A stretch of 59,956 nt of DNA, the filler included, from Basidiobolus meristosporus CBS 931.73 (lineage: Eukaryota > Fungi > Basidiobolomycota), in assembly GCA_002104905.1 (NCBI GenBank). It is 3 parts of 3 records of this genome, joined end to end, with 100 filler letters (N's around TTAATTAATTAA, not from the genome) between each part and the next. Parts side by side here need not be neighbours in the genome. Positions count along the whole stretch, not along the records: positions 40,818 to 59,956 come from MCFE01001042.1; 2 more parts are not named here. One strand, 5' to 3'. A model generated the notes under the pieces. It made no database searches and had not been told where the DNA came from. It worked only from the letters and a program-made list of their open reading frames with translations. Below are positions 40,818-59,956 of this stretch, in pieces. How positions within the stretch are numbered: position 1 is the first letter of the stretch; each line of letters begins with the position of its first letter. The position numbers and the translations under genes are program-made.

Positions 40818-41005
40818 TTGTAGTTCAATAGTTTTCCCTTGACAAGCTTGAGGCTTTATCCCCCATCACTTAGATTAGATAAAAGACCCAGTATTCCTAG
40901 CAAGCTTTTGCCAGAGGTTATCGCACCCAGTGAACACCCCACACACATTCACACTTGAGAAGTGTTGGCCGTATTTTGCCCCTTTGGACTTATACACCAC
41001 CACAG
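40818..41005 (-). repeat. Partial LTR of the family seen at 57447-58517 and ~53785-54050
   Basis: Reverse complement of the 5' part of 57447-57640. Confidence 0.75.
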
Positions 41006-42090
41006 CGCCACTCCTACGGTTGTGTCCAGTTGGTCATTTGTTAGCTGTACCCAAATGGTGTCATTGGGGACTATATCTAACTTTAGATATTTTGCTAATG
41101 ACTCTGACATGATTAACATAGAGGATCTTGTGTCAATAAGGGCAAGAATTTCCTTATTTTCTATATGTACCTTTACATATGTATCCTTATTTGGTTTTTG
41201 TAGGACCATCCAGTTGACATGAAGGGTTGTCATCTCCTTCAATCCCTTTATCAGTTCCTTGACTAGAGCTGGGGCAGGTCCCATTAAACTGGTTATTTGG
41301 AGGGTTGCCTTGGTTTGCTCTAGTATCTTCATCACAGGGAATAGGCCATGGGAAGACATACTAGCTTTCTTTGTTTGCTTCAACACTTCTTCTCAAGGCT
41401 CATTCCATACTTCTTCACCTAATTTGGCATTCTTTCCTTTTGACAGAACCTGTACTATATAGTTCCTTTGCCTCCTCTCTAGAAGCATCATGTTGATGCT
41501 TCTTCTTCTGCACTTTGACTGTTCTGACTGGAGGGTTTAGAATGACTGAGTCCTATTGGCTTCCTGGCAAGAGACTCTCTCTTTTGATGCCTTCTTCTTT
41601 TTTGTGTCCAGTATGGGTTCTTGTCTGTACCATTTTTCACATCTGTGGGCTTGGTGGCCTACTTCTCCATAGGTAATGTCATTGCAGCTGTTCCATCTTT
41701 TAGGTTAAGGGCTTGCACCTGGACCTTTAGATCTATGACAGCTTCTCAGAGTTTATCACCTTCTTTGGGGACTTTGTGGACTTTGTTGCTTGAGAGTTCT
41801 TGGACCTTTCACTGTAATTCCTGTAACTCACAGTCTGTTGGAGAGGCAATTTTTCCTTTCTTATGGAGGATTCCTGTCCTTCAATTACTTGTATCACTGT
41901 AGGATAGCCCCCATAGCAAGATGATCACTTGTACTGGTTTGACCAACTTTTGCAATGTTTTACATCCCTGTTGTTCTTTGGATGCCTTACGTCTTACTTT
42001 TTTGTCTAAGCCTATGATGTAAAATCTCATGAGCTGTTGTTTAGCAATTTTGTCCTTCAAGAGACATCAAGCTTGTTGGAGAAACAGCTC
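41006..42090 (-). mobile_element. Gypsy gag/protease remnant
   Basis: ALIDTRSS protease-like motif in ORF 40949-41386; decayed gag upstream. Confidence 0.7.
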
Positions 42091-42092
42091 AG

Positions 42093-43175
42093 TGTAGGCT
42101 GTGAGTACTAAATGCAGTACCCACTCTTTGCCAAAGAGTCCTCCCCAGAATCCTACCCAAAGTCCCCCAGTATCCTCCCTATGATTCCCCCACATGCCCT
42201 CCCTTCTATCCATACCCTTATCTAGTTAGAACACTTACCATAACAGAAATGTGCTCACACCCCTATTATATAACACATTGACTATTATCTAAACCCCCCA
42301 AGTGATATATATATGTACCCAATTGAACCAAGACAGAGAGATTTGGGACGGAATAAACACAAGTCTTTATTACCTTGCTACCTTCTATTGGAATCTATTC
42401 TGAACCAAGTGGTACTGACTTGACCTACAAGCTCTCCCACTCACCAAGTACAGTCAGTAATAACCCACATATTTGGTGCCATCTCTGCCAAAAGAAGCAC
42501 AAGTGAGGTAATGACTACTACAATCAAACTAAAAACATACAAGGGAAAGAGAGAGAGAGCCCTTGAGTGGTTTGATGAGTTTGAGAGAGTTGCGGTTGAT
42601 GCAGGATGGGACAACAATAAGAAAGTGAGGGAGCTTGCAAGACATATGGAAGGGTCAGCATGGCAATGGCATTATGGGTTGGACTCTGGGGAGGACTCTT
42701 GGGCAAAGAGTGGGTACTGCATTTAGTACTCACATGGGCTTCATCTAGTGCATTCCAGTCATCTTTAACTGCAACTTCCAAGCCATAATGGCAGCAAATA
42801 TGCGGTTATCACTGACTGTACTTGGTGAGTAGGGGAGCTTGTAGGTCAAGTCAGTACCACTTGGTTCAGAATAGCTTCCAATAGAAGGTAGCTAGGTAAT
42901 AAAGACATGTGTTTATTCTGTCCATATCTTGTTGTTTGTTCACTTGGTTTATCAGATACATATATCACTTGGGAGGGCTTAGATAATAGACAATGTGTTA
43001 TGAAATAGAGGTGTTAACACCTTCCTGCTACGGTAAGTGGTCTAACTTGATAAGGTCAGGAATAGGAGGGAGGATGTGCCAGGGATTCATAGGGAGGATA
43101 CTGGGGGACTTTGGGTAGGACTCTGGGGAGAACTCATGGGTAAAAAGTGGTTACTCCATTTAGTACTGACAACCT
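42093..43175. mobile_element. Two inverted LTR-like arms (~390 bp) flanking a gag start
   Basis: 42093-42485 is the diverged reverse complement of ~42787-43175; gag ORF 42511-42726 (WFDEFERVA). Confidence 0.7.
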
Positions 43176-43254
43176 ATAAGTGCGTAGGTGGTGCCACAAC
43201 TTTATTTATAACTCTTACTAGGGCAGGTCATTGATGAATCCTACATTCATGTAT

Positions 43255-45062
43255 GTGCAATGTCTCAAATGCAAGACTGTCTTAAATTCACATGAGTACT
43301 CACAAAAAGGAGATATAATAGCATTAGGTTGTTGAGTAGCAAACTGTTTGCCCCATGGACAAGACTACTTTGATTCAATGCTGTAGAGAAGAGAAGAAAG
43401 ACCATGTGCCTACTGTAGCAAGCTTCTCAGCCATGAAGGTCACAGAGAGCATAGGAAGTACAACAAGGATCATGGCCAGTGTTCTACAACACAAGTCATA
43501 TTTGACCATTCTTCAGACACTACTGTACCAATAATATCTTGCTGGGCACTTGATACTACTAAAACAGCTTCTGGATGTACTTGTCATTGTGCACAAACTA
43601 AGTCACAAGAATTTGTGTCACTTTTAGGCTCACCCCAGCCTTCTGAATATAGCCTGCAGAGTGATAGCTCTAAAGAATCAGGCTCACTGATGGATTGGGA
43701 GCCTATTTTCCCTAACAACAGTACCCTGCATGAGCCCAGCAAAATCCCATTTTGCAATTAGACAACATCCATGGAAAAAATGCCAAGGATGCTTGGTGGA
43801 GCCAAGTGAGCCCAGTATTACATCCACTGGTGAATGATGAGATGTTGTGGCCAGAGCAGTGGTGCATTTCCACTAATATCAGTAATGGGGGCTTTGAGGA
43901 TTTACACTACTTCTTGCCAAAATCATTTCAAGATGCAAGCTTTCATGTACATGATATAAATGGAAAACTATCATGCAGCTGGCAACATATGACCCAGAGA
44001 CCTTTCTGTTACCAGCATGTGTTGGCAGTTGCATGGTGTCCACATCAGAAAATGCCACCATTGTAAGGTGTCCAACTTGTCAGGAATCCACCACTATTAG
44101 GGGAAAACATTGATCACACAGTGGATATATTCCAGTAATGTCCCATATAAAGAATCACATGCAGTCCAACAGATATTGTGAGCTATAAAGTACCATACTC
44201 AGCATCAATCAAGCACACACAGATCAGATATATTTTATGGCAAACGTTACAAACAGCTATGAAGCAAGGGCTACCTTGAAGGTATTTATGACCATGCCTT
44301 TGCCTTGGTACCTGGTGAATTCTCATTAAACAAGTGCTCTACCAACAACTCCTGCTAGCCACTGATTCTCATAAACCTGAATCTGCCACCTATCTTACAG
44401 TATTAGAGTAGAAATCTGATGGAAGTCCCACTGATATCTGGGCCTAAAGCATTGTCCTACCTGGATGCCTACTTGAATCCATTGCTGGATGAATTTTGTA
44501 TGCTTTTAAGCAGGATAACAGCTAATGGCCATCATGTAAAAGCACATATTACTATCTGCATTGAGGAGACCCCAACCATCAGCAAAATAGCCAGCTTTTC
44601 TGGGCACTATGGATGGTATTGCTATCAAGTGTGTGAAATCCAGGGGACTTACTCCATAACTCACTCACATTATTATTACCTAAGCACCAAAACTAAGAAC
44701 ATCATCTATCCACAGAGAGAACATACAGAAGTCAGCATGCAATTGCAGCAAAGCTGGCAAACTATAAGCCAATGGCAACATTATGAAATTAACTGGACAC
44801 CACATAGGCTTAAAATAGAGGGTATTTTTGGAGCAAAGGCTTTCCACTGGGAGCAATGCATTTGCTTCTGAAAAATATCCCTATACTGATCACCAAGCTG
44901 TACATGGGGCATTTCAAGCTAAATGAGCCCTTTGAGATACAGGAGAAATCTGAAAGAAATGGTAAGACATTACAGAGTATCAGCTACCCCAAGTACTTCT
45001 CACAGGCTCTAATCAATATGCAACAACACAAGTGCAAGGACTGGATGAGCTGGATATGTATT
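43255..45062 (+). pseudogene. EnSpm/CACTA-like (tnp2 type) transposase, 5' part
   Basis: ACVGSCMV, PLISGPKALSYLDAYLNPLLDEF, KIASFSGHYG..C..CEI, HLLLKNI, KDWMSWIC. Confidence 0.8.
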
Positions 45063-45248
45063 AGACTTCTTCTGTTGAATAGTGCCACATTGAGCCATGA
45101 GTGCCAAATGAAGTCCTAGTGTGCCAGAGAGGCCATGTGAACCTGTACTTGGCTACAGAGTGTAAAACTTAGCTCTGCATCTTCATGCCAAGCAGCCCTT
45201 GTGTTTAACCTATGATGCAGGAGAAAATCCATTTTTTGATGTTTTTTT
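45063..45248 (+). repeat. Left terminal inverted repeat
   Basis: AGACTTCTTCTGTTGAATAGTGCCAC... aligns with the reverse complement of 50700-50885 (roughly 80% by eye). Confidence 0.85.
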
Positions 45249-45440
45249 CAGTATGCCTCCCAGTTGGAATCTTACATTTTAGACCATCAATTCTGTATCA
45301 AAACAGTAAGATACTCTGGAAGCAACGCAACTTAAGAGTGTATGTATTTGCATACCTTGCATGTCAAGGGTTAAGAAGTGTGTAAAGTAGATGCCCTTTG
45401 CACATTACTAAATAAGCAAATATTTGTATGTTATCAAACA

Positions 45441-45514
45441 GCTTGCATAGCTCAGTTGGTTAGAGCATGGTGCTAATAACACCAAGGTTGTAGGTTTGAC
45501 CCCTGCTGTGAGCA
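45441..45514 (+). tRNA. tRNA-Ile(AAT), CpG-decayed
   Basis: Anticodon arm TGGTG-CTAATAA-CACCA; T-loop GTTTGA. Confidence 0.9.
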
Positions 45515-45687
45515 AATTTCCTTTTTTGTTTTTTCCTAGCCAACTCATTTCCCTCAAGTTATTGTCAAAATAGATACATACACAAGTGTACTTTCACAAA
45601 GTTGTTGTTTAGTGGCTTTGTTATATTGTATGCTGATAAACACTTGGAAGAAATATACAGTTTATTCTTTATTTTATTGTAACTAAT

Positions 45688-45759
45688 TCTCAGATAGTAT
45701 AGTGGTAAGTATCCCCACCTGTCTTGTGGGAGACCCGGGTTCAATTCCCAGTCTGAGAG
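45688..45759 (+). tRNA. tRNA-Asp(GTC), CpG-decayed
   Basis: CCCAC-CTGTCTT-GTGGG; TCTCAGA/TCTGAGA acceptor stem. Confidence 0.9.
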
Positions 45760-46118
45760 CTTTTTATATGGCACTCTAAGTATAGTAGTATAGGCAGTAG
45801 CAATATTATATTACTTGATAACCTGTTTATTTGAAAATACATAGATAAAGTTTTTACAACAGTATTTCTGCCTCATATATATATATATACATATATGTGC
45901 CTCTGTTTGCATCTTGGCCCATAGTTATAGGATATGAATCTTTACTGGGAATTGTACAAAAGATTTCACCCACACAAAGAGCAAGTATACCGCCAAATCC
46001 TCAAGGCAATACCACCCTAACAAGATGCACAATACACTATTTGTCATTTTACAAAAGTCCTCAAGAATATACCAGTACCTAGCAATATCACCACTACTCC
46101 AGAAAGCCTAATATAAAT

Positions 46119-46191
46119 GGGGGTCTAGCTCAGATGGTAGAGCACTTGCTTAGCATGTGAGAGGCACTGGGATCAATACCCAGGTCCTCCA
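46119..46191 (+). tRNA. tRNA-Ala(AGC)
   Basis: CTTGC-TTAGCAT-GTGAG; G3:U70; T5 terminator. Confidence 0.9.
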
Positions 46192-46308
46192 TTTTTGCCA
46201 TGTTGCAGTAAAGAATTTTAATATTTGCAGCAATGCTATTTTCCATTTGCTCAAAGCCATTCATTTATATTTATCTTGGGCATAAAAAAACTGTTAAAGT
46301 GTGTAAAA

Positions 46309-46380
46309 AGGATGCAGGCAAATTTGAACCACCAACCTGTTGATCTGCAGTCAATTGCTCTACCACTGAGCTATATGTCC
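46309..46380 (-). tRNA. tRNA-Cys(GCA)
   Basis: TTGA-CTGCAGA-TCAA. Confidence 0.9.
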
Positions 46381-46504
46381 GTTACTTGGAAGGCTAATAT
46401 TATACAGATTCACATATCTGTGAATGCAACAATGATCTGTCAATCTCATCAATTGCTGTTTGAAAAGTAAATCCATCAAAAGCGGATCAAGGCAAAAGTA
46501 TAAG

Positions 46505-46577
46505 CACCCAATGTGGGGGTCAAACCCACAACCTTGGGATTAAGAGTCTCACGCTCTACCAATTGAGCTAGCCAGGC
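46505..46577 (-). tRNA. tRNA-Lys(CTT)
   Basis: TGAGA-CTCTTAA-TCCCA; GCCTGGCTAGCTCA start. Confidence 0.9.
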
Positions 46578-46854
46578 CACATGGCTGTATGTGTAAAAGC
46601 TTAGTTATATTCCTTTTGTTTGCTTGAAAAGACCTGCGACCATTAAAGCATAGCATAAAATCATACCACCTATATAGACATATATACTTCATCCCAAGGG
46701 ATTTTCAAATATTGACAATATTTCATTGTGTGAAACAGACACCCAGAGCATGGTACTGCATATATTAGGAGAACCTGAGGTATAGAATCACCGCACAATT
46801 GTTGTTTTGTGATGCATAGTAACAACACAGAGTAAAAAAAATATCAAAAGAAAC

Positions 46855-46927
46855 TACTCCCTGCCAGGATTGAACTGGTGACCTTCAGATTATGAGACTG
46901 ACATGCTGCCAACTGCGCTAAGGAAGC
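46855..46927 (-). tRNA. Elongator tRNA-Met(CAT)
   Basis: TCAG-TCTCATAA-TCTGA arm. Confidence 0.88.
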
Positions 46928-47096
46928 ATGTATACCGGGGATATCTTATATCAATATATTACAAGCTCCAGACTATTTTGCATGATTTAATACCCCACAG
47001 TAGGGTAGCAATAATCATTCAGGAGGTACAATATTGTGCCAGCAAAATTCAAACAACATTAAAAATGAGCCTTTACAACGTAGTTGAATGCAAAAG

Positions 47097-47168
47097 TTCC
47101 CCATTGGGGAATCAAACCCTGGTTGTCTTGGTGAAAGCAAGAAATCCTAACCACTGGACCAATGAGGA
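47097..47168 (-). tRNA. tRNA-Glu(TTC)
   Basis: TCTTG-CTTTCAC-CAAGA. Confidence 0.88.
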
Positions 47169-47511
47169 ATACATGAAAACATTCTAACTACAATGCTGTG
47201 TTAATGTGTAAGTGTAATGTTGCACAGCAGTTCAATCGTTAATACATCCCTTTGCTAGGTCTATTTTGCATGATAAAAATTGCACCCTTGGCAGTACAAT
47301 AAGTTATTGTATGTGAGTGCTTAGAAGCCTCTGGTCAAGGTAAAGGCTTCTAGCATATATGGCAAGTTCTTGGGCAAGATTTGATTGCAGACTCTGCAAA
47401 GAGAAGCAATAAGTATACATATTCTTCAACTCCTATTTAGCATTCACACATTTTCATGGTATAAATGTAATAGTGACACTCATACATTTGAGGAGTCAGC
47501 AAAAGATTAGA

Positions 47512-47583
47512 TAGAAGCAAGAGGTTTTGATCCTCCAACCTCAGGGTTATGAGCCCCGTGTGCTTCCTCTGCGCTATGTTGCT
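47512..47583 (-). tRNA. Initiator tRNA-Met(CAT)
   Basis: A1 start, GGGGCTCATAACCC arm, GGATCAAAA T-loop of the eukaryotic initiator type. Confidence 0.9.
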
Positions 47584-47824
47584 TTGTTGAATATCTAAGA
47601 CAAAGACGCCCTTTTGACCCTTTGGTAGGACTGTATTACAATCTGATATTTTGACTGTGCCCATGCACGCATACCTCCAGTTTAAATAGTATACAAAGTG
47701 TAACCATTCAAAAGGGTATGATTCACACCTCTGAAATGGCTCTTCCTACCCAATCCTATAAAACACATGTCAAGCAACAAAAGACTCTTGATGCCAACCA
47801 GTAATCAGTACAAAAAGAGAAAGC

Positions 47825-47898
47825 CACCCCCGGTGGGACTCAAAACCACAATCCTCAGATTAGAAGTCTGATGCCTTATCCAATTAGGCCACAGGGGC
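47825..47898 (-). tRNA. tRNA-Arg(TCT)
   Basis: TCAGA-CTTCTAA-TCTGA. Confidence 0.9.
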
Positions 47899-48057
47899 AT
47901 TTTGTTCTTGTTCCCTTTGTTTTGCGTATAGATGTAAACTAAATGAAGTACTATGCGGTGATTCCCTTGTGACTCTAGTGACTGTATTCTTATGACCGTC
48001 CAAATTTCTGCCAAACCTTAGCCAATTCTAAGTAACATTGGCTAAAAAAATAAAAAT

Positions 48058-48130
48058 TGCCGTCTCTGCAGATCAAACGCAGGTCCTTCAGAACTTCAGT
48101 CTGATGCTCTCCCAACCAAGCTATGGCGGC
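48058..48130 (-). tRNA. tRNA-Phe(GAA)
   Basis: TCAGA-CTGAAGT-TCTGA. Confidence 0.85.
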
Positions 48131-48373
48131 TATACATTTGCTTGAATATTGAGTATGAAGTAAGTTAGTTGACTAATAGTGTAAGATAGTGTCATCACTA
48201 CCTTGGGCAAGCCCTGTTTGCCATAGTATCTGCAATACATCCTGTAGTCATGGCATTCTCTGGATAATAGTTATTTTAATGAATCGCAGTAACCCGTATG
48301 GATTTTGTACTACTTAGCCCCTTTTTAACTACTAAGGTGATATATCTGATTAAGATTTGGTTGCAAGCATTTT

Positions 48374-48447
48374 GCTCTTGTGGCGCAATTGGCTAGCGCA
48401 TCTGACTGTTAATCAGGAGGTTGGTGGTTCAAGCCCACCCAGGAGTG
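48374..48447 (+). tRNA. tRNA-Asn(GTT)
   Basis: CTGA-CTGTTAA-TCAG. Confidence 0.92.
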
Positions 48448-48668
48448 ATTACCTTTTGCTTGAAGCTTTAGCACTCCCTTTTTTGCTATTCAGCTGGAAA
48501 TGGGTTAGGAGTCTGGGGTATATTTGTATGTGCCACACACATGTTACTGTCAACTATCTACTTTAATGAATGTACTTGAATACTGAAGCAAAGAGCTGCA
48601 CCGCCATTATCCAAGGAGTAAAACTCAAAACTTCTCAGCCAATTAATGTAGCTGGGACAAAACAAGAC

Positions 48669-48754
48669 TCCAAACACCCGGATTTGAACCAGGGACCTAA
48701 AGATTGCTATGGTAACACTACAGTCTTCTGCTCTACCCACTGAGCTATGTTTGG
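48669..48754 (-). tRNA. tRNA-Tyr(GTA) with ~13-nt intron
   Basis: AAGA-CTGTAG | TGTTACCATAGCA | ATCTT; intron at the canonical 37/38 site. Confidence 0.88.
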
Positions 48755-48854
48755 GAGCTCACAGGAGTCAGAACCAATATCAATGATAAACTAGATGTTT
48801 CAAATAATTGCAGCATTCCCATAGATTCCTTTATAACAACTGGAACGTGAAAAT

Positions 48855-48937
48855 GGAGAGATGGACAAGTTGGTCTAAGGTGTCACATAAAGGCCGTGAT
48901 CTCTTTGGAGGCGTGGGTCTGAATCCCACTCTCTTCA
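48855..48937 (+). tRNA. tRNA-Leu(AAG), long variable arm
   Basis: TCAC..TAAAGGC..GTGA; variable arm CTCTTTGGAG. Confidence 0.85.
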
Positions 48938-49184
48938 TTTGTTTTTGCTCTCTTCTTTTTCCTGGTATTTCTCTTGACCTTTGGGATGTACACCACCGGT
49001 GATCAGGTAGAGCAACAATTTTATGACATGGCCACTTCACTATATGGATAGCCACTATGATTATGCTCAGTTTAGGCATTGATATGATTGATTTGCCCGC
49101 ACAGCATTGATGAATATCTTGGCAAATCCCCACGCTTACAAAAAAACCAGCAGCACCTACATTCAGGTAGAGCCCTTGGCAAAA

Positions 49185-49257
49185 TGCCTTCTGCCGGAAT
49201 TCAACCAGCAACCTTCTGCTTACTAGGCAGATGCTCTGCCAACTGAGCCAAGAAGGC
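49185..49257 (-). tRNA. tRNA-Thr(AGT)
   Basis: TCTGC-CTAGTAA-GCAGA; GCCTTCT/AGAAGGC acceptor stem. Confidence 0.9.
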
Positions 49258-49815
49258 AACATGTCTGAGCATACTAGATGGGCTCTATGAGGAAAATACC
49301 TAAGCAAGAGTCTTATTCTATAAGGCTATTTGGGGTGATAAACTGATGTAGCACCAGAGCCATGATGTCAGAAGGTAGGGTGGCATGATTGTGCGCAACA
49401 ATGATAGGTTTGAATTGCAGTTGAACATACCCACAGAGTGGCTAACCAGATGATAAACCGTAAGGCAGTTATGCCAAAAGTTTTGGCAGCCGGCAGTGTT
49501 GTTTTGAGGGGCAGTTTAGCCTTGATATTTTGCATTGATTAACTAACCCTAATCAAAGGAGGAAACATGCACATTCCTGGGTATATGACTTGGCCATCCA
49601 AGTCCTTTTTCTGTTTTATCAGCTTTATGGTGAGTAAGGTAAGAAGCAACACCTGTGTCCAAGCAGGCACATAACTCCTACTCTTGCCATTCCCAGCAAA
49701 ACAGCAACAATACAGTAAGCCAGATGCAGCTAGCCAACAAAATAATGAAACATATTATCTCATGTGTCCAGGTATTGCTCAAAGAAAGGAAATTGCAAAG
49801 ACACCTACAGCAAAA

Positions 49816-49886
49816 TGCATACTTGGGGAATTGAACCCTGGTCTACCGTGTGGCAGGCGGTAATTATACCACTAAACCAAGTATGC
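49816..49886 (-). tRNA. tRNA-Gly(GCC)
   Basis: ACCGC-CTGCCAC-ACGGT; GCATACT/AGTATGC acceptor stem. Confidence 0.9.
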
Positions 49887-50012
49887 AATTACAATAGGGG
49901 GGCAGAAAGGTAGTTCATGATAATATTCAGGGGAAGCAGTGCACAACTTTGGATGTCACCACCAAAGGCTAAAGAGATTCATAGTCCACCAGCTGGCAAG
50001 TATATGCTATAA

Positions 50013-50085
50013 GGGTGTATGGCCAAATGGATAAGGTGCCTGACTACAGATCAGGAGATTCCAGGTTCAATCCCTGGTATGCTTG
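50013..50085 (+). tRNA. tRNA-Arg(ACG)-like body whose anticodon now reads ACA
   Basis: ATGGCCAAATGGATAAGG D-arm and CCTGA-CTACAGA-TCAGG; ACG>ACA is a CpG transition. Confidence 0.8.
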
Positions 50086-50293
50086 CTATTATGCAACCAA
50101 CATTTTGTAGTCTACAACTATGAGAAAATGTTACATGCAATGAATCAATGAAATACCATTGAAGGAGAGGTCAATTCATCAAGTGTGCTGAGTTCTTAGT
50201 CACAAAAGCATAACATTGGTGAATAAAATATTGGCTTATCTAGCCAAACATACAGTGTACTTAGTCAAGAATGTATTTAAATTCAAAAAGGTT

Positions 50294-50365
50294 TTCCCCA
50301 TCAGGGAATCAAACCCTGGCCGTCTCAGTGAGAGCAAGAAATCCTAACCACTGGACCAATGAGGA
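50294..50365 (-). tRNA. tRNA-Glu(CTC)
   Basis: CTTG-CTCTCAC-TGAG; body nearly the same as the Glu(TTC) copy. Confidence 0.88.
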
Positions 50366-50392
50366 CAAACACAGAAGAGCTGAGGACATACA

Positions 50393-50646
50393 TCAGGTAC
50401 TCAATACCCATGGCACTCTGAATCTAGCTCCTGTGGCTTGTAACATGTCACAAAAATGCATGGCACTATCTTGGTCCACTGATATTATCTGGCACTATAA
50501 GTGCTTTGTATAGATCTTACTTTAGGGCTAATAATTATATATAGTGCCAGATAATATCAGTGGACCAAGATAGTGCCATGCATTTTTGTGACATGTTACA
50601 AGCCACAGGAGCTAGATTCAGAGTGCCATGGGTATTGAGTACCTGA
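50393..50646. repeat. Perfect 107-bp inverted repeat with a 40-bp spacer
   Basis: 50393-50499 is the exact reverse complement of 50540-50646. Confidence 0.97.
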
Positions 50647-50699
50647 CACATGTCTTCAGTTCTTCTATGCACTTACGCATCCTGCACTACATTGACCAA

Positions 50700-50885
50700 A
50701 AAAAAAGGTCAGAAAATGGATTTTCTCCAATACAATGGGTGAAGCACAGGGTTGGCTTTGCATAAAGATGCAGAGCTATGTTTCACACTCTGTGGCCAAG
50801 TATAGGTTCACTTATCCTCCCTGGCATACTATGGCATCATTTAGCACTCATGGTTCAATGTGGTACTATCCAATAGAACAAATCT
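50700..50885 (-). repeat. Right terminal inverted repeat
   Basis: Ends ...GTGGTACTATCCAATAGAACAAATCT|ATT. Confidence 0.85.
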
Positions 50886-51420
50886 ATTTACTCAAGTGGC
50901 CTTTTGAAGCCATTTCTACTAAAAGTACATTGGAAGCATTGGGAGCCATATGTGGACACTGTACAAATACTTATCCAGAAGCAGATCAACAATGCCAACT
51001 TGATGCATCTAGAGCCTTTGTGCAAAGAGTTTATGGTAGGATTTGAGCAGCTATACTACAAGCATAAAGCTGAATGTGTAGATATCTACTACTACTAGTT
51101 CCATTTTCTACTTCATCTTGCTTGGTGTGTTGAAAATAATAACCTTGCTTCACCTTTTGAGAGTTTCCTATCAAGCAGATGTGTAGCAACATGGGAAGAC
51201 AAGTCAAGTTGCAGGTACTACCCTATCCCAATTTTGTAAATGTTACCTTCAAGCCCATCATGGATGTGATGAGTTGGCAAATGGAGGACAGCCACAAAGA
51301 GTTGCAAAATACTGAGGATAGATGTACACATGGAGACACCTATGCCTATGGCTTTAAGAAGCTAAGTGGCCCCTATGCATGGGTACTCAGTTAATAATCA
51401 AAATTGGGTTGGGTGCAACA
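50886..51420 (+). pseudogene. EnSpm/CACTA-like transposase, 3' continuation
   Basis: IYSSGLLKPFL..HWKHW..FEQLYY..FHFLLHLA..PYPNF. Confidence 0.75.
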
Positions 51421-51559
51421 AGCAACTAGTTTTCATTTAGAAACTCTATTAAGGTGTGTCTGATTTCTCTTGGTCACAAGCCAACTTCTACACCATTGAA
51501 TACCATAGCCACATAGTATTGTTTGATTTAATCTAAATGTGAAATACCCAAGGTAGTGA

Positions 51560-51711
51560 CTAATACTACTGATTTGATAGTTAAAACTGTTATACTGAAC
51601 AGTTAAACAAAAAATTAATTGATTTGACTAAAAACTGGTATAAGTTAGGCATTCAATTTGCAGATCATAACACTGTAATATCTTGCCAATCTTTCAAATT
51701 TCTAGAGTAGC
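51560..51711 (-). repeat. Fragment of a gypsy LTR related to 54921-55288
   Basis: Shares TAATTGATTTGACTAAAAACTG...GCAGATCATAACA. Confidence 0.6.
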
Positions 51712-53440
51712 AAAAAGGGCTTATTCAGCTGAAGTGCTCAGTATACAACTAGGCCATTAGAATAGGGATATTGTGGAAGAGCAAATGCATTGCTCTTGGT
51801 GGAAAGCTTTTGCTCCAAAAATACCCTCTATCTTAAGTATCTCTGGCTTCCCATTAATTCCTTATTCTGGCTAATGGCTTATGGCTTACCAGCTTTGCAC
51901 CAATTGTATGCTGACCTTTATACATTCTCACTGTGGGAGGATGATGTTCCTAGTATTGGTGTATAGAAAATAACAAAACATGTGAGTTCTGGAGTAAATC
52001 CTCAAATCTCACTTGTACAATGAAAATACCTTCCATTGTGCCCAGAGGAGCCAGCCATCTGGCTGATGGCTGGGGTATCTCCAATGCAGATAATGAAATA
52101 CTCTTGGATATTACAGTTTTTTTGTAGTATCCTGCAGAAAAGCATACAAAATCTATAGCAATGAATACAGATAGCTTTTCAGGTAGGATGGTAATTTAGG
52201 CTTATATAATGGTGAGACCATCATCTGATTTGTGCTCTAATAGAGTAAGATGGGCTGCAGATTCAGTATGATGATAATTAGTGGCCATTAGTGCTTGCTG
52301 TTAGAGTGCTTGTTTAATGAGAATCCATCAAGTGCAAAGGCAAAGGCATTTTAATACATACCTTGAAAGAGGCCCTTGCTTCTTTGCTGTTTGCAATGTA
52401 TACCTTCAAATATTTTGCATAAGTTTGCCCTTGATTGCTACTTGACTTGTTCTGTTGGATAGTGCCACATTGAGACATGAGTACTAAATGATGCCATAGT
52501 GTGCTGGAGAGGCCAAGTGAGCCTATAATTGGCCACAGAGTGTGTTGGTCAGATATTTTCAGCCACCTGGTGGTTGTCTATTTGTACCATGTACATTACA
52601 AGTTGCATCCTGAAATGCTTTTGGCAGGTAGTAGTACAAAATCCTCAAAGCCCCCATTACTGATATTTGTGGAAACATGCCACTTCTTTAGGCATAATAT
52701 CACATCATTCACCAGTAGAAGGATTATTGGGCCCATTTAGCTCCATTAGGTATGCTTAGTGTTTCTTCTATGGGTGCTGTGTCATTGCATATTAGTATCT
52801 TGCCAAGCTCAGGCAGAGTACTGATGTCAGGAGATATTGGCTTACAACCCATCAGCAAGCCTTCTTCATAGGATATATTACTCCACATGTCATATTTAGC
52901 AGGCTGAGGTGAGCCTAAAGGCGGCTCAAGCTCACCTGACTGAGTTTGCGCAAGGTGGCTAGGTGCTCTTTTAGAAGTATCAAGCTGCTGTCAAGATATT
53001 GCTGGTACAGGAGTGGCTGATTAATGGTCAAATATGACTTGAGTTGCATTGACTGTCTGTAAAACTTATAATACTTCCTTTGCCATCTGCATTCTTCATA
53101 GCTGAGAGGCCTGTTACAGTAGCCACATGGTCTTTTTCTCTTTTCCTACAGTCTTGTCCATGAGGCAAACAGTTTGACACTCAACAGCATAACACTATTA
53201 TATCACTTTTTGTCAATATTTATGTGAATTTTGGATATTCTTGAATTTAAGACATTGGACTTGTTCCATTGTGCCATTGGTCATAGTGCCAGAAAGAGCT
53301 GTATATTTTATTATTAATTTGCTATTCTAGGGTCATATGCATGTCAATTTTGATCCCAAATTGGCACTGTATGGCACCATCTGGCATGCTATGGCACTAT
53401 CAGGCACTATGATCAGCTGGAGTGATGGAACAAGTTTATT
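51712..53440 (-). mobile_element. Second, inverted, diverged EnSpm/CACTA-like copy with its 5' terminus
   Basis: Reverse complement aligns to 43255-44930; cluster of GTGCCA motifs at 53265-53410. Confidence 0.75.
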
Positions 53441-53784
53441 GCAACTTTATGAGTGTGAGATTTGATGATGACCAGCCATAGTAAGCAATTTAAGTAAAGT
53501 TATATCATTAAATACACAAGTATATGTGACACTTTTTCCCCTTTGGTATGAGCCATTACTATATATGTGGCCAGAAATTAACACAAAGTTGTCAGGTCCC
53601 AAACCAACCCCAATGATCACTGCCACAGAAGAACAGCAGGACAACCACTTGTGTAGACATTCAGTGCAACAAGCATGACTACATCCAAAAAAGGCCATGT
53701 TGTCAGTGTGCACACTGAAGGTAATAATGCTAATTTCTCAGGCTCTCAGTCAAGTAGGCAAATGAGAATCAGTGAGGTGCTGCT

Positions 53785-54050
53785 GTAGTGGTCTAAAAGT
53801 CCAAGGAAGAGATACATCTAACACTTCTCTAGTATTTTGTGTATAGGGTATTCACTTGATGCAATGACCTTGGGCAAAAGCTTCATAGGAATACGTGGGC
53901 GCGGTCTCAACTCTAATGTGAGGGGTAATAAAGCCACAAACATGTCTAGGGAAAACTATTAAGCTACAATCCCTAACTTAATTGGCATCTTGGCAAATGA
54001 ATGTGCCACCCTCATTGTCCTTTGAGATGACTATGTACTAAAGCTTCCAA
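53785..54050 (+). repeat. Partial LTR of the 57447-58517 family
   Basis: TGTAGTGG...AAGTCCAAG...CTAAAGCTTCCAAA. Confidence 0.7.
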
Positions 54051-54920
54051 ATAAATATTTTTCCCTTTACCTTTTCCTTCATCACTACCAGGTCTTTCAT
54101 TGCCACTTTGTCTGCATGCGTCTTGTAAAGAACTACATTTTCTCCTTGATAAATTCTGCTCTGATGCATCTGTTTTGGCCTGGTTGTCCCTTGCCAGCAC
54201 TTTTCTGCAACCTGATGTTTCTTTCTTGCTTGTTTTGAGCTCTGAACCATAGTTGTGACAGGCTCCTGTAAAAGCTGCTGTTTTTTATCACTTTCAGCTC
54301 CTTCACTGCTACTTTGACTAAGTACTTCTAGAGTGGTACTATGCTTTTTCCTCAATAAATGTTATGCTGATGGATCTATGTCTGCCTGCTTGTCCCTAAT
54401 TGGCATTCTTCCAGCTACCTGATGTTAACACTTTTCTGGAGCTTCCAGCCCTGCTTGTGATGGGCTCTTGAGAAAGCCATTGGTTTTTAACATGGCACTC
54501 TTATTCTTCTGCCTTTGATAGTTTCTGCCATTCTTAAGATACTGTCTTGGCATACCAATGCTGGCACAAACTCCATTTGCCTATTTGGATCCAGGATAAT
54601 GCTCAGGGAACAAGTCAAGTGCAGTCTGCTTGGCCTCAAGCTCCTAATGGTCCTATGGTATAGTGACCTGTTAGTGATGGTAAAACACCACATTGTCTCC
54701 CTCACACATTGTGATAAGTATTTCAGTGGGCTTTATCTTACAACACTGTTGTTGTGCTTCAAAGACTGTACAGTGTTCCTCCGCTGTTAGATTGGGAAAT
54801 GGCTCAATTCTTGGCTGTGACATTGAGCTACTGGAGTTCCTTCCTTGCAGCAAAAATACTGCTTTCTCTGCCTGGGATATTGATTGCTCTACATGTATTT
54901 TCTACTCATCCTGCTTCTGC
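54051..54920 (-). mobile_element. Decayed gypsy gag-like remnant
   Basis: Fragmentary ORFs resembling 41450-42000. Confidence 0.4.
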
Positions 54921-57900
54921 TGTTACAAGTCTTAGTATAAGAGTTGTAGAGGAATAGGGAGTTTAGCTAGTATTGTATTCACTAAAGCTTGAACTGATTT
55001 TTATTGAGGTTCCAGCAGCTCCTTATATACATTCTGTCAGATCAATTGCTGACTAATTGTATTTCCTAATGTAGGTTGTGGCTGATGACTCATTTGATTG
55101 CATCATCATCACCCAATAAGATCCTACTTAATATATCTATTTCTGTCTGATAAGGATCTGCTGATTCATTTGCTGACTAATGCTACTGATTTCAAAGATA
55201 ATACTGATATACTGATAACCTAAACATATACTAATTGATTTGACTAAAAACTGATCTAACTTAAACATTCAAGCAGCAGATCATAACATTCTCCCCTACT
55301 AAAGTTGAGGGGGTTCTCCTGAATCTCTTTTCTTGTGATACCAATATCTTGATGGTTCAGTATTGTCAGCAAGTCTTGCAAGCTTGAGTCTGTCCTTATG
55401 CACTAAGTCTTCTGGGATATTACCTTGTTTGTCCACCAGTTGGTAAGTTGCAAATGGACATTCTCTGATGATCTTGAGTGGTCCTGTCCATTGTGGCTCA
55501 AACTTCTTCCAAGTGTTGTTTCTTAGCAATACAAAGTTCCCAACTGTCAATGCTTCTGGTGCTATAGTCTTATCAAATCTCTGCTTCATCTTTTCTGCAC
55601 TTTGAGATACTTTGGTCTGTGCCTCTTGACGTCTTTGTTCCAGTTGCTGGTGTCTACTTGGCTGACTGAGTTCATCTTCTAAGGTGTCTGTAAGCTTTGG
55701 TGGTGTGAGATCTCCTGGAATTCTTGGTTCACATCCATAAACTAAGTAAAATGGTGATTGCTGGGTGGTGTTGTGTACTCTGACTCTGCATGCAAAGAGT
55801 GCTTGGTCTATATACTCATCCCATCTACTGACAACTCCATTTGCATACTAGGTCAGCATTTTTCCAAATAATCCATTAAACCGCTCAGTGACTCCATTAG
55901 TTCTGGGGTGATATGCCGAGGTTTTCAAGTGTCTGATCTGCTGCATTTCCAGGTAAGCCTCTAATGTCTTTGCCATAAAGTTCGCACCTCTATTGGATAA
56001 GATCTCCACAGGGCATCCAAACTTCATCAGGATCTCATGGTAAATGAAACTTGCAACTTCTTGTTCACTGGCTATTGGTACAGCTTTAGCAACTGGCCAT
56101 TTAGTGGCATGGTCAATAGCTACTAGGATCCAATGGTTGCATTTCCTGGTAGTTGGCAGTCTTCCAATAAAGTCAATTCCCCATCTCTCAAATGGTCTTA
56201 CAGGCTCCAAAGGGAAGAGTTTGGCAATTCTTTGTAGCTGGCCTTGATTGATTTGGCAGTTTGGGCATGTTTTCACTAGCTTCTCAATATCTTGTTTCAT
56301 TCTGGGCCACCATGCTCTGGCTTTTACAAGGCTATAGGTTCCTTCAATCCCAAGATGTCCATATCCATTGTGTAGCTTATGTATTAAATCCAGGCAAGCA
56401 ACATAAGGACAATAGGCAATAGGGCATCCATCAACAATTTGGTAGAGTGTTTCATCCTGTACAACAAATTTGCTGGCTTCATCACGGATTATCTTCTTGA
56501 TATCTTCATCCACCTCATTAGGAATGGCTTGGTCCTCCAAGTACTTTGGTAATAGGCTAGGCCAATCTGATTCATGCACCAAGTTGAGTTGTGCAACTTG
56601 ATCTAATCTTGATAAGACATCAGCAACCGTGTTGTTTTTTCCTGGGCAGTAGACAATCTCCAGGTCAAATTGCTGAATGTATTCACTCCATCTTGTCATT
56701 CTTCTAGAGAGTACCTTCTGAGTAAATATATACTTGAGGGAGGCATGATCAGTCTTCACAGTGCATTTGACTCCTTCAATATAGAATCTCCATGTCTTCA
56801 AACAGTGTATTATAGCAAGCATCTCCTTTTCATGGACTGGATAGTTTTGTTCTGCTGAGTTCAGTTTCTTGGATTCAAAGGCAACAGGGTAGTCCTTTCC
56901 CTCGTGTTCTTGGCTCAGCACTCCACCAATTGCATAATCTGAAGCATCTGTGCACAGAGTGAACTCTTTTCTGAAGTCTGGTATTCTTAGGCTTGGCAAC
57001 TTAGCAAGTTCATTCTTGAGCATCTGGAAGGCAGTCTCACAAGCTATGTCCCACTTGTAGGTATTGTCTTTCTTGAGGATATCAGTTAAAGGGGCTGCAA
57101 TACTTGCAAAAGACTTGACAAATCTCCGATAATAGGAAACCATTCCGAGGAATGATCTGAGTTCTGATATGCTATGGGGCTGCTTCAAATTCTTGATTAC
57201 TTCCACCTTCTTTGGGTCTAAGGTTACTCCTGTGCTAGTCACTATGTGTCCCAGGTATTCAACGTGCTCCTTGAAGAATTCACACTTGGCTAGCTTGCCA
57301 TATAGCTTGTTCTCTCTTAGTTTCTTCAAGACCTTTTCAATGTGCACTACATGATCCTCTTCTGTCTTGCTGTATATCAATATGTCATCCAGGTAGATTA
57401 TCACAAACTTGTCTAAGTACTCCTGAAAGACAGTCTGCATCAGCGTTGTGGTGGTGTATAAGTCCAAGGGAGAGATACGTCCAACACTTCTCAAGTGTTT
57501 TGTGTGTGGGGTGTTCACTGGGTGCGATAACCTCTGGCAAAAGCTTGCTAGGAATACTTGGGTTCTGTCTCTAATCTAATGTGAAGGGGAATAAAGCCAC
57601 AAGCTTGTCAAGGGAAAACTATTGAGCTACAATCCCCAACTTAGTTGGCGTCTTAACAAAAGTATGTGCTGGGTTCAGCGTCCTTTGAGATGACAATGTA
57701 CTAAAGCTTCCAAAGTCAAAACAACTGTAAACTCCACCAGCAGGGACTTGATAAGAATGCAGCTTTGGTCAATAGTTACAAAGACAGAAAAGTATTTTTG
57801 CCTGTACAAGAACAAACTTGGGAAAGAATCAAATATAATAAAAGATACCTACTCTGAGTATTCCTCACAAGTAGTGCCTCCAAGGTCAGTTGGCTGTCAG

Positions 57901-59956
57901 CACGGTTTCCTGGGAGTGTCCTGTGGTCTAGGGTTGGAAGTTCAGGTAGCAGCAGGTAGCAGTGATCACACTAATCAACAAGTTGGTATATTGATAAAAG
58001 GGATGATGATTTATTGTTGAGGGATAGCCTCCCTTATATACTTTTCTTACTGGCTAAGTGATTACTAATCATGGTGTTCCAGAAGGTTCCGGATATCAAT
58101 AGAAATCTTAATGACATCAGAATGACCTAAGAATGTTCTAAGTGGGTGCCGGAAGGTTCTAAGAGGCACAGCACATCCAACCAATCAGGAATCAGTATTC
58201 TGAAACCTGTGTAACATGGGGATACCATATATGGTATGGAAATGGTAGGGATGGTGACACGGGTTGATCATGTGTCACGGGTACTGGCGCGGGTACTTGC
58301 CTAATATAGAAGAACTTGTAACTAGTAATCTTACATAAAGTGAGGGGTAACTTATGCAATAAGGTAGCAGGTGTGATAGTCAACCGGCTTATGGGATAGT
58401 ACTGATTGGGTAAGACAAAATGGGATAAAACTAAAATGAGTGTAGTAGGGATATAGGGAAGTAGAAAATAAGGGAATGAGCACATCTGTCAGTGGGTGTC
58501 ACTGTCACCCCACTACAGCGTCATGAATGTTGCAGTGGCATTGATGAGGCCAAAACTCATGACTAAGTACTTGTAATGTCCATATCTGGTCCTGAATGCC
58601 GTCTTGGGGATGTCTTCTGGCTTCACCCAAATCTGGTTGTATCCTGACATGAGGTCAATCTTGCTGAAAATAGTGGCTCCATTAAGTTGGTCTAAAAGCT
58701 CATCAATCCAAGGTATGGGGTACTTATTCTTGACGGTAACTGAGTTCAGGGCTCTGTAGTCAATGCACATCCTAAGTGTTCCATCCTTCTTTTTCACAAA
58801 AAGCACTGGTGCTCCCCAGGGTGACTTGCTGGGCCTGATGTATCCTTGCTCCAATAGCTGATCAATTTGTCTCTTCATTTCCTCCAATTCTAATGGACTC
58901 ATTCTGTAAGGTGTCTTGCTCACTGGAGGGCTATCTCCTGTGTCAATGGCATGATCCACGTCTCTGACTGGTGGTAGGCTTACAAGCTCATCTGGGAACA
59001 CGTCAGAATATTTCTTCAAGAGAGTCTGGACCTGTTGGGGTGCTGGGGTAGAGGAATCCTCCTGTAATACTGCCATGAGGAACATCTTGGTACCTTTTCT
59101 AAGTGCTCTACAGAACTGGGTCTTGCTAAGTTCACTTGTCTCACACACACTGGAATTGATCAAGTGGAAATCCAGCATGGCAGGTAATAGCTCATAGGTC
59201 TTGTTGTCTTTTTGGATCTGAGTAGCATGGGTTCTCCAGTTGATTGATGGATTACAACAAAATAGCCAGGTTTTTCCAAGTACAAGGTCAAACTTGCAGT
59301 TCCCAAATATATAAGCCTGTAGGTCTTCTTAATAGTCATTGATCTTCATTCTTACTGGCTGGGTAATACGGTTGATTATGTGGGAGTTCCCATCAGCTGT
59401 GGAAACTGAAGTTGATTTGGTAGGTTCCAAGTTGATTCCAGCTTTCAAAGCAAATTGCTCTGACATGTACTCATGCAATGCTCCTGAGTCAATCATGATC
59501 TTGGCAGGTACTCCATTGATCACTCCATTCAAGTACAATAACTTCCCTGAGTTTGAAGTCATTTGGGACAAGTACTCTTCTGTCATATGGAAGGTGAGTT
59601 CCGAGTCTTCTTCAAGCTCATCTTCCACATTACTGTGTTCATGGGACTCAATATGGTTGAAGGTTCTTGTTGGCTGGTGTCCATTTCTTCTCTGAGGGCA
59701 GTACTTTGCAATATGTCCCTGCTGGTGGCAATTGAAGCAAAGTCCTCTCTTCTTGCATTCTTCTGAGGAGGGATTCTTCTGCATAGCGTCTATTTCCATT
59801 AGTACTGCTGCTGATTGTCTTCTTTCATAATGATTATAGCCTTTCTGATTAGTCACTGTAGGCTTCCCAACTCCAAACATAGCTGAGTCATAGTCAATGG
59901 CAATCTTGATGGCTTCTTCAATAGTCTGAGGTCTTTGGTAATTGACTTCCTTGCGA
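54921..59956 (-). mobile_element. Ty3/gypsy LTR retrotransposon (PR-RT-RH-IN), runs off the window, interrupted by a solo LTR
   Basis: CCHC knuckle, MIDSGA, SPWGAP, YLDD, DASDY, H2C2, WGIDF, YHPRTNG. PPT 55289-55300. 3' LTR 54921-55288 (TGTTA..TAACA). Confidence 0.93.
57447..58517. mobile_element. 1,071-bp solo LTR inserted in the gypsy RT
   Basis: TGTGGTGG..CCACTACA with GCGT duplicated at 57443-46 and 58518-21; removal restores FMTLMQTVF. Confidence 0.88.

Follow-up and report, generated by a model that had tools for sequence, protein, structure and literature searches.

A decayed array of 16 tRNA genes between the inverted ends of a putative DNA transposon in Basidiobolus meristosporus

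A 5.8-kb block inserted in a transposase gene

We analysed a 19-kb piece of the genome of the fungus Basidiobolus meristosporus CBS 931.73 (MCFE01001042.1, assembly GCA_002104905.1), which occupies positions 40818–59956 of a stretch of 59,956 nt (the window), along whose whole length all coordinates are counted. Within this piece lies a block of 5,823 bp (45063–50885), hereafter the element, which has terminal inverted repeats (TIRs) and a target site duplication (TSD) of ATT, carries 16 tRNA genes and interrupts a decayed transposase gene of the EnSpm/tnp2 type (copy A). A second, inverted copy of this host gene (copy B) is present in the same piece. An initial annotation, made from the sequence alone, had read the block as a DNA transposon with an array of tRNA genes as its cargo. 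The ends of the element and the parts of the host gene are as follows.

43172–45059, plus strand: host gene copy A, upstream part; decayed tnp2-type transposase with stops and frameshifts, CpG observed/expected ratio 0.01
45060–45062, no strand: left TSD, ATT, read directly; a single ATT restores the host frame
45063–45248, plus strand: left TIR, starting AGACTTCTTC, with AGTGCCA-type subterminal motifs inside
50700–50885, minus strand: right TIR, whose end on the reverse strand is AGATTTGTTC
50886–50888, no strand: right TSD, ATT, read directly
50889–51391, plus strand: host gene copy A, downstream part; the homologues P0122, P0124 and P0126 continue past the join to about 51391 (tblastn)
About 53525 down to 51670, minus strand: host gene copy B, decayed, truncated at the point equivalent to 44978

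Consistent with the TIRs of about 185 bp and the ATT flanks described in the initial annotation, blastn aligned 45062–45248 with 50700–50886 in inverted orientation over 187 nt at 81% identity (E = 3e-45), and ATT was found at 45060–62 and 50886–88. We then built two candidate empty sites, one for a duplicated ATT and one for a duplicated TA, and aligned tnp2-type homologues to both by tblastn. Removal of 45063–50888 (5,826 bp, that is, the element and one ATT) yielded the in-frame peptide W-I-C-I-Y-S-S-G-L-L, as had been predicted, and four tnp2-type proteins, P0122, P0123, P0124 and P0126, crossed the ATT join without a gap. For P0122, the alignment over the join covered residues 99–262 (164 amino acids, 44.5% identical, 155 bits). 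The spacing K-x-W-x-x-W/F-x-x-x-Y/F-S-x-x-L-L was exactly preserved across this reconstruction, and downstream of the element the expected motifs of the host frame continue to about 51391. Because the homologues align gap-free across the ATT join and the host frame continues beyond it, the whole block is one insertion, with a 3-bp duplication, at an ATT in the reading frame of the transposase.

The TA duplication that the initial annotation had offered as an alternative boundary did not hold up. It introduced a one-residue gap in P0122, P0124 and P0126, the homologues that align to both reconstructions, and lowered their scores (150 bits for P0122, compared with 155 bits for the ATT boundary); it would also give a 181-bp relative of the element, described below, TG/TA flanks instead of ATT/ATT. 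The ATT duplication is therefore the right boundary, and the TA alternative is disfavoured.

The type of the interrupted gene was likewise supported. Copy A gave a weak match to the Pfam family Transposase_21 (E = 0.008), and its relatives among 1.8 billion representative proteins are clear but distant, the best being 39% identical and a named one coming from Rhizophagus irregularis. Copies A and B stand tail to tail in inverted orientation and are about 73% identical, with a Kimura two-parameter distance (K2P) of 0.30–0.33.

Could the two TIRs instead belong to two separate insertions of one family that bracket a pre-existing tRNA cluster? The family is dense here, since the 19 kb contain another three pieces that bear its ends, and the initial annotation had named two independent miniature inverted-repeat transposable elements as an outcome that would count against it. 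The codons on the two flanks, however, directly follow one another in a single transposase gene when one ATT links them, and the homologues align there without a gap; a tRNA cluster of 5.4 kb cannot be native to such a reading frame. Moreover, a scan of the piece for the terminal motif with at most one mismatch found no inward-facing end in either arm. Because inward-facing ends are missing, the element does not consist of two whole small elements side by side, and we regard two bracketing insertions as very improbable. Still more improbable is an assembly artefact that joined a tRNA cluster to transposon sequence. The region is rich in repeats, and the piece may have been assembled from short reads, but a chimeric join would not leave ends that match in inverted orientation, duplicate exactly 3 bp and put the host gene back in frame.

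Sixteen tRNA genes and their decay

ARAGORN identified 16 tRNA genes on both strands between 45441 and 50365, and Rfam at its gathering score agreed. Bit scores in the following list are those of Rfam; C56 is a near-invariant tRNA base at the core of the B box.

45441–45514, plus strand: tRNA-Ile (AAT), 59.8 bits; T-loop TTTGACC, C56 lost
45688–45760, plus strand: tRNA-Asp (GTC), 49.2 bits; positions 37 and 38 are both T, and the T-stem has one mismatch
46119–46190, plus strand: tRNA-Ala (AGC), 46.1 bits; five G-U pairs, T-loop ATCAATA
46309–46380, minus strand: tRNA-Cys (GCA), 48.2 bits; three stem mismatches
46504–46577, minus strand: tRNA-Lys (CTT), 47.8 bits; two mismatches, C56 lost
46854–46928, minus strand: tRNA-Met (CAT), elongator type, 43.4 bits; three mismatches
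47096–47168, minus strand: tRNA-Glu (TTC), 44.5 bits; C56 lost; a 90% identical paralogue of tRNA-Glu (CTC)
47512–47583, minus strand: tRNA-Met (CAT), presumably initiator type, 42.9 bits; T-loop ATCAAAA, three mismatches
47823–47899, minus strand: tRNA-Arg (TCT), 58.8 bits; C56 lost
48058–48130, minus strand: tRNA-Phe (GAA), 39.2 bits; two mismatches, C56 lost
48373–48448, plus strand: tRNA-Asn (GTT), 63.6 bits; intact cloverleaf
48669–48754, minus strand: tRNA-Tyr (GTA) with a 13-nt intron, 59.8 bits; intact cloverleaf
49184–49258, minus strand: tRNA-Thr (AGT), 65 bits; stems intact, T-loop TTGAATT, C56 lost
49815–49887, minus strand: tRNA-Gly (GCC), 49.3 bits; four mismatches
50013–50086, plus strand: tRNA called Cys (ACA), 54.2 bits
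50294–50365, minus strand: tRNA-Glu (CTC), 50.6 bits; C56 lost

No species occurs twice among the 16. The initial annotation was thus right about an array of different tRNA genes on both strands, although its count of 17 was one too many and its 14 amino acids become 13 with the anticodons as read. A possible 17th gene at 45936–46007 on the minus strand appeared only when the ARAGORN threshold was set to 85% and had a poor cloverleaf and no T-run; a second candidate at that threshold was rejected for an intron at a non-canonical position. Rfam added no further tRNA gene at E ≤ 1.

For the gene called Cys (ACA), the most likely origin is Arg (ACG), the CpG of its anticodon having decayed to CpA. 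We favour this assignment because the D-arm of the gene matches that of the Arg (TCT) gene of the same array and because the gene resembles tRNA-Arg-ACG through the anticodon and T arms; overall identity was effectively equal in the comparison with Arg (TCT) and Cys (GCA) (46/77 and 45/78, respectively). An ACA anticodon that arose by CpG deamination is a marker of an array no longer under selection. The initiator assignment of the tRNA-Met at 47512–47583 relies on the A54/A60 signature. The two Glu genes are products of a local duplication, which took place either in the cluster or before it. Their similarity extends to about 20 nt of 3′ flank (47077–47168 for TTC and 50270–50365 for CTC; 83% identity over 96 nt), and the seven differences within the genes are all transitions.

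We take the array to be of eukaryotic nuclear type, given its A34 anticodons, the intron in tRNA-Tyr and the initiator T-loop. A run of at least four T residues was present within about 20 nt downstream of all 16 genes (for Thr and Gly, the distance was counted after discounting the extra eighth acceptor pair given by ARAGORN), and none of the 16 genes had an encoded CCA or a poly-A tail. These T-runs, together with the missing CCA and poly-A, indicate that the tRNA genes are copies of genomic RNA polymerase III (Pol III) units and not retrocopies.

The spacers between the tRNA genes, which the initial annotation had put at 100–560 bp, are unique and measured 118–556 bp. As had also been noted, the interior has no credible protein gene: none of the four open reading frames (ORFs) of at least 80 amino acids contained a Pfam family, and neither the longest of the interior ORFs (48834–49307, minus strand) nor the TIR-encoded part of the ORF at 50735–51043 had a homologue among 5.8 billion proteins. 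A transposase gene was likewise missing from the interior, as in a non-autonomous TIR transposon. One further feature lies between the tRNA array and the right TIR.

50370–50669, no strand: palindrome of 300 bp, with 130-nt arms that are 95% identical and six AGTGCCA motifs

Beginning 4 nt ahead of the 5′ end of tRNA-Glu (CTC), this palindrome replaces the upstream region of that gene. Its arms differ by a K2P of 0.05, compared with 0.23 between the TIRs of the element, and it has the AGTGCCA motif but lacks the terminal motif of the element; it looks like a younger foldback insert. The matches of Rfam to the palindrome were all to microRNA hairpins below threshold (mir-5014, 74 bits against a threshold of 101), which reflects generic similarity among long hairpins.

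The state of the tRNA genes points to an old and decayed array. Of the 339 stem pairs in the 16 tRNAs, 47 are G-U and 21 are mismatched, so that about 20% are not Watson–Crick pairs, roughly as neutral change predicts from the K2P of 0.23 between the two TIRs. The T-loop sequence TTCGA was found in none of the 16 genes (TTTGA was present in six and TTGAA in one), C56 was lost in seven, and Rfam scores were mostly 39–55 bits. When cloverleaf, T54/T55/C56, B box and anticodon were considered together, only Asn and Tyr appeared fully intact.

The CpG observed/expected ratio was 0.21 in the tRNA genes and 0.19 in the spacers, and this equal depletion indicates that the tRNA genes were not spared methylation-driven decay. 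Across the whole piece, which is 41% G+C, the ratio was 0.12, falling to 0.01–0.02 in the oldest repeats, with a matching excess of TpG/CpA. CpG loss was strongest at TCG/CGA, which account for 5 + 7 of the 93 remaining CpGs, and the index of a process like repeat-induced point mutation (RIP) was 2.83; the same context preference explains the loss of TTCGA from all 16 T-loops. A RIP-like process in Microbotryum shows this pattern of CpG loss in the TCG context (PMC10502011).

Together, CpG depletion, loss of C56 and stem decay suggest that silencing and decay affected the array as they did the DNA around it. Read from these substitutions, this copy is an old fossil, probably methylated after its insertion and decaying neutrally since, in which most tRNA genes would now be pseudogenes. 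We found no support in this copy for the roles that the initial annotation had put forward, namely a Pol III/TFIIIC insulator against silencing, a translation booster or a source of retroelement primers, given the same CpG depletion, C56 loss and stem decay. A stronger proposal would be a mobile tRNA cassette under selection, for tRNA supply or as a Pol III/TFIIIC boundary, of which this copy still functions. Such a cassette would account for the 16 different species, which we estimate to have a chance of roughly 1 in 20 if species are drawn at random from about 45, for the terminators on all 16 genes and for the three or four intact cloverleaves (Asn and Tyr, and the stems of Thr and Ile). 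Against it stand the seven genes without C56, the anticodon that now reads ACA, the 21 mismatches and 47 G-U pairs, the low Rfam scores, CpG depletion at the level of the spacers and a setting that is a graveyard of methylated transposons; we consider it very unlikely.

The end family and its surroundings

When one mismatch was allowed, the terminal motif RGACTTGTTCYRTTG was found at just four sites in the whole piece: 45063 (plus strand), 50885 (minus strand), 52443 (plus strand) and 53257 (plus strand); a partner with three mismatches was found at 53437, on the strand opposite to 53257. The last two sites of the motif outside the element define two relatives.

53257–53437, plus strand: miniature element of 181 bp with many TGGCAC motifs; its ends are GGACTTGTTCC and, on the reverse strand, AAACTTGTTCC
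52443–52543, plus strand: solo TIR end, the outer 100 nt, 84–85% identical to both TIRs of the element, with the flank ACT

The 181-bp element is located in host copy B and has ATT on both flanks (53254–56 and 53438–40), whereas copy A has a single AAT at the corresponding position and represents its paralogous empty site. The alignment of copies A and B scored 131 when the 181-bp element and one ATT were removed and 88 when the element was kept. Only about the first 15 nt are common to the 181-bp element and the 5.8-kb element. The paralogous empty site of the 181-bp element is thus an independent sign of mobility and of the 3-bp duplication. The solo end, also in copy B, replaces 211 bp of host sequence that copy A has kept (43995–44205), and it looks like what an insertion left behind after a subsequent deletion.

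Twelve of the 14 AGTGCCA motifs lie inside elements of the family, which make up 5% of the piece (binomial p = 2e-14). The local signature of the family thus comprises 5′-RGACTTGTTC termini, AGTGCCA/TGGCACT-type subterminal repeats and 3-bp ANT duplications. The end family was mobile, and it is for this family only that we found further copies with their own duplication and empty site. Each of the three insertions of the TIR family is present in just one of the two host-gene copies, and they are therefore later than the duplication of the host gene. A scan of metagenome contigs for the invariant core of the TIR gave 18 matches without wider similarity, which we regard as chance matches, and exact-sequence look-up of ten ORFs of the window in the protein collection gave no match.

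We next compared these ends with described superfamilies. Elements of the Pangu group, within the PIF/Harbinger-ISL2EU-Spy (PHIS) superfamily, make 5′-ANT-3′ duplications and have TIRs of 11–40 bp that usually start with AG or GG; they are present in fungi, plants and animals (Han et al., PMC4482050). A DDE transposase of the PHIS/IS5 type, with a second ORF in autonomous members, also belongs to the group. The flanks here were ATT for the 5.8-kb element, ATT for the 181-bp element and ACT for the solo end, all of the form ANT. The five family ends start with AG, AG, GG, AA and TG, that is, with AG or GG in three of five. Judged by duplications and end sequences, the element and its end family fit the Pangu group of the PHIS superfamily.

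Other assignments were rejected. Canonical PIF/Harbinger elements need a TWA duplication, whereas the flanks are ATT, and reading the duplication as TTA would leave one end 3 nt longer than the other. Tc1/mariner and other TA-duplicating families are excluded by the 3-bp duplication. EnSpm/CACTA, with duplications of 2–3 bp, agrees with the inserted element in the length of the duplication but not in the termini, which are AGACTT and AGATTT here and not CACTA or at least CA..TG.

The rest of the piece is a nest of transposons, in which the following further features were recognized.

55299–59880, minus strand: Ty3/gypsy gag-pol, with gag-protease, reverse transcriptase, RNase H and integrase over several ORFs; truncated at its 5′ end, where the piece stops
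40818–41386, 53782–54051 and 51557–51672, strand not given: gypsy-related fragments, related copies scattered in the piece
42095–43176, no strand: foldback element whose arms, about 388 bp long and 84% identical to each other, enclose a 300-bp centre

The best relative of the gypsy pol ORF, at only 70% identity, lies on a 1.7-kb metagenome contig from the European Nucleotide Archive that contains no CpG at all. The named relatives of the pol ORF and of the transposase are all fungal (Ustilago, Absidia, Circinella, Puccinia and Rhizophagus). The foldback element has TA on both flanks (42095–96 and 43175–76). Homology between copies A and B stops at the right edge of this foldback element and does not resume on its left.

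Origin of the cargo and comparison with known systems

We propose that the element is a non-autonomous cut-and-paste DNA transposon with Pangu-type ends and a cargo of 16 tRNA genes, inserted once, a reading to which we give a probability of roughly 70%. Because no transposase lies inside, the element would have been moved by an enzyme made elsewhere. The enzyme may have been a transposase of the Pangu/Harbinger type that recognized both the terminal motif and the TGGCAC repeats in the subterminal region, and that cut the ATT with a stagger of 3 bp. The cargo between the ends would be nuclear DNA of host type, about 5.4 kb long, that contains 16 Pol III transcription units, all complete. It may have been acquired in either of two ways: two members of the family could have flanked a mixed tRNA cluster and their outer ends been used together, or a tRNA cluster could have been copied in by gap repair, as in Pack-type elements. 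Once inserted, the element would have been methylated like the neighbouring transposons and decayed neutrally, doing nothing measurable today.

Several points weigh against this proposal. The TIRs of the Pangu group are described as 11–40 bp long, whereas similarity between the two arms here extends over 187 nt; the piece contains no Pangu-group transposase, and the assignment is made from the duplications and the ends. In addition, a single cargo-bearing copy is known, searches of proteins and metagenome contigs having given no relative, so that the cargo may not yet have been between the ends when the element moved.

One alternative makes use of this last point. A foldback element with two arms (about 390 bp) could have inserted first at the ATT, and the 5.4-kb tRNA block could have been added later in place, either as filler DNA from break repair in the centre of the palindrome or by another insertion, without ever being carried by a transposon. 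Short palindromic elements of such a shape are present at 50370–50669 and 42095–43176, and no second copy of the composite was found in the protein and metagenome-contig searches. The CpG observed/expected ratio of about 0.2 in the interior, against 0 in the TIRs (372 nt), could also mean that the interior arrived later, although the numbers are small. However, the inner borders at about 45258 and about 50690 have no end signals or duplications, and decay of 20% of the tRNA stem pairs is close to the divergence of the TIRs (K2P 0.23), which suggests a similar age. Furthermore, a 5.4-kb copy-in at a break is the very mechanism assumed for Pack-type capture, so that this alternative would differ from our proposal only in timing. 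We consider this order of events unlikely, and continue to favour a transposon that carried its cargo.

This proposal would place the element near several known systems. TIR transposons are well known to capture host DNA in the form of fragments of protein-coding genes. Like Pack-MULE and Pack-CACTA elements, the element here has inverted ends, a target duplication, no transposase and putatively captured host DNA within one unit, and ordinary short members of its family exist. Its interior, by contrast, consists of nuclear-type tRNA gene units, with 16 whole Pol III genes and their terminators in place of the fragments of protein-coding genes found in Pack-type cargo, and its ends point to another superfamily, with a 3-bp ANT duplication; only a single copy is known. 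Its likeness to the Pangu group lies in the ANT duplications (ATT, ATT and ACT), in AG or GG at three of five ends, in the occurrence of the group in fungi and in the short non-autonomous relatives. It differs from that group in the length over which its TIRs are alike (187 nt, compared with 11–40 bp) and in having no transposase or second ORF, and the Pangu descriptions that we compared mention no element with an RNA-gene cargo.

Composite or macro-transposition, as with maize Ac/Ds and the giant elements flanked by foldback sequences in Drosophila, likewise uses two ends to move long chromosomal DNA with one duplication; those cases are genetically defined and have known donor sites, whereas the event here would be reconstructed from its product. 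Cassandra, a terminal-repeat retrotransposon in miniature, is also a non-autonomous mobile element with Pol III gene sequence (5S rRNA in its long terminal repeats). Cassandra, however, is a retroelement in which one kind of RNA gene forms a structural part, whereas here a DNA transposon would carry a mixed array. Dada DNA transposons insert into tRNA or small nuclear RNA genes (PMC3706591, PMC8869645) and so share a close tie between a DNA transposon and tRNA or small RNA genes, but in Dada the tRNA genes are targets, whereas here they are passengers and the target is an ATT in a transposase gene. The tRNA arrays of phages, giant viruses and bacterial mobile elements resemble this one as varied, non-redundant sets of tRNAs on a mobile element; they are thought to serve the translation of their carriers, whereas the element here has no genes of its own to translate and its tRNAs are of eukaryotic nuclear type. 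In a full-text literature search, we came across no description of a eukaryotic DNA transposon that carries a mixed array of whole tRNA genes. The cargo of 16 different whole tRNA genes is therefore unusual, while the mode of movement would be like that of a Pack-type or composite transposon.

For this copy, the lesson is a negative one, in that 16 Pol III genes gave it no protection from methylation and decay. The Pangu-like family, with its paralogous empty site, should be useful for annotating a poorly sampled genome. In yeasts, binding sites for Pol III and TFIIIC act as chromatin boundaries. It is conceivable, but doubtful, that a Pangu-like family spreads a non-redundant cassette of at least 16 tRNA genes by cut-and-paste, with young copies that are transcribed and the present copy an old, silenced one; in that case, a DNA transposon would relocate both the dosage of tRNA genes and the sites bound by TFIIIC. 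More generally, if such elements amplify, they would offer a DNA-level route by which tRNA genes are dispersed, tRNA clusters are seeded and Pol III/TFIIIC sites are moved.

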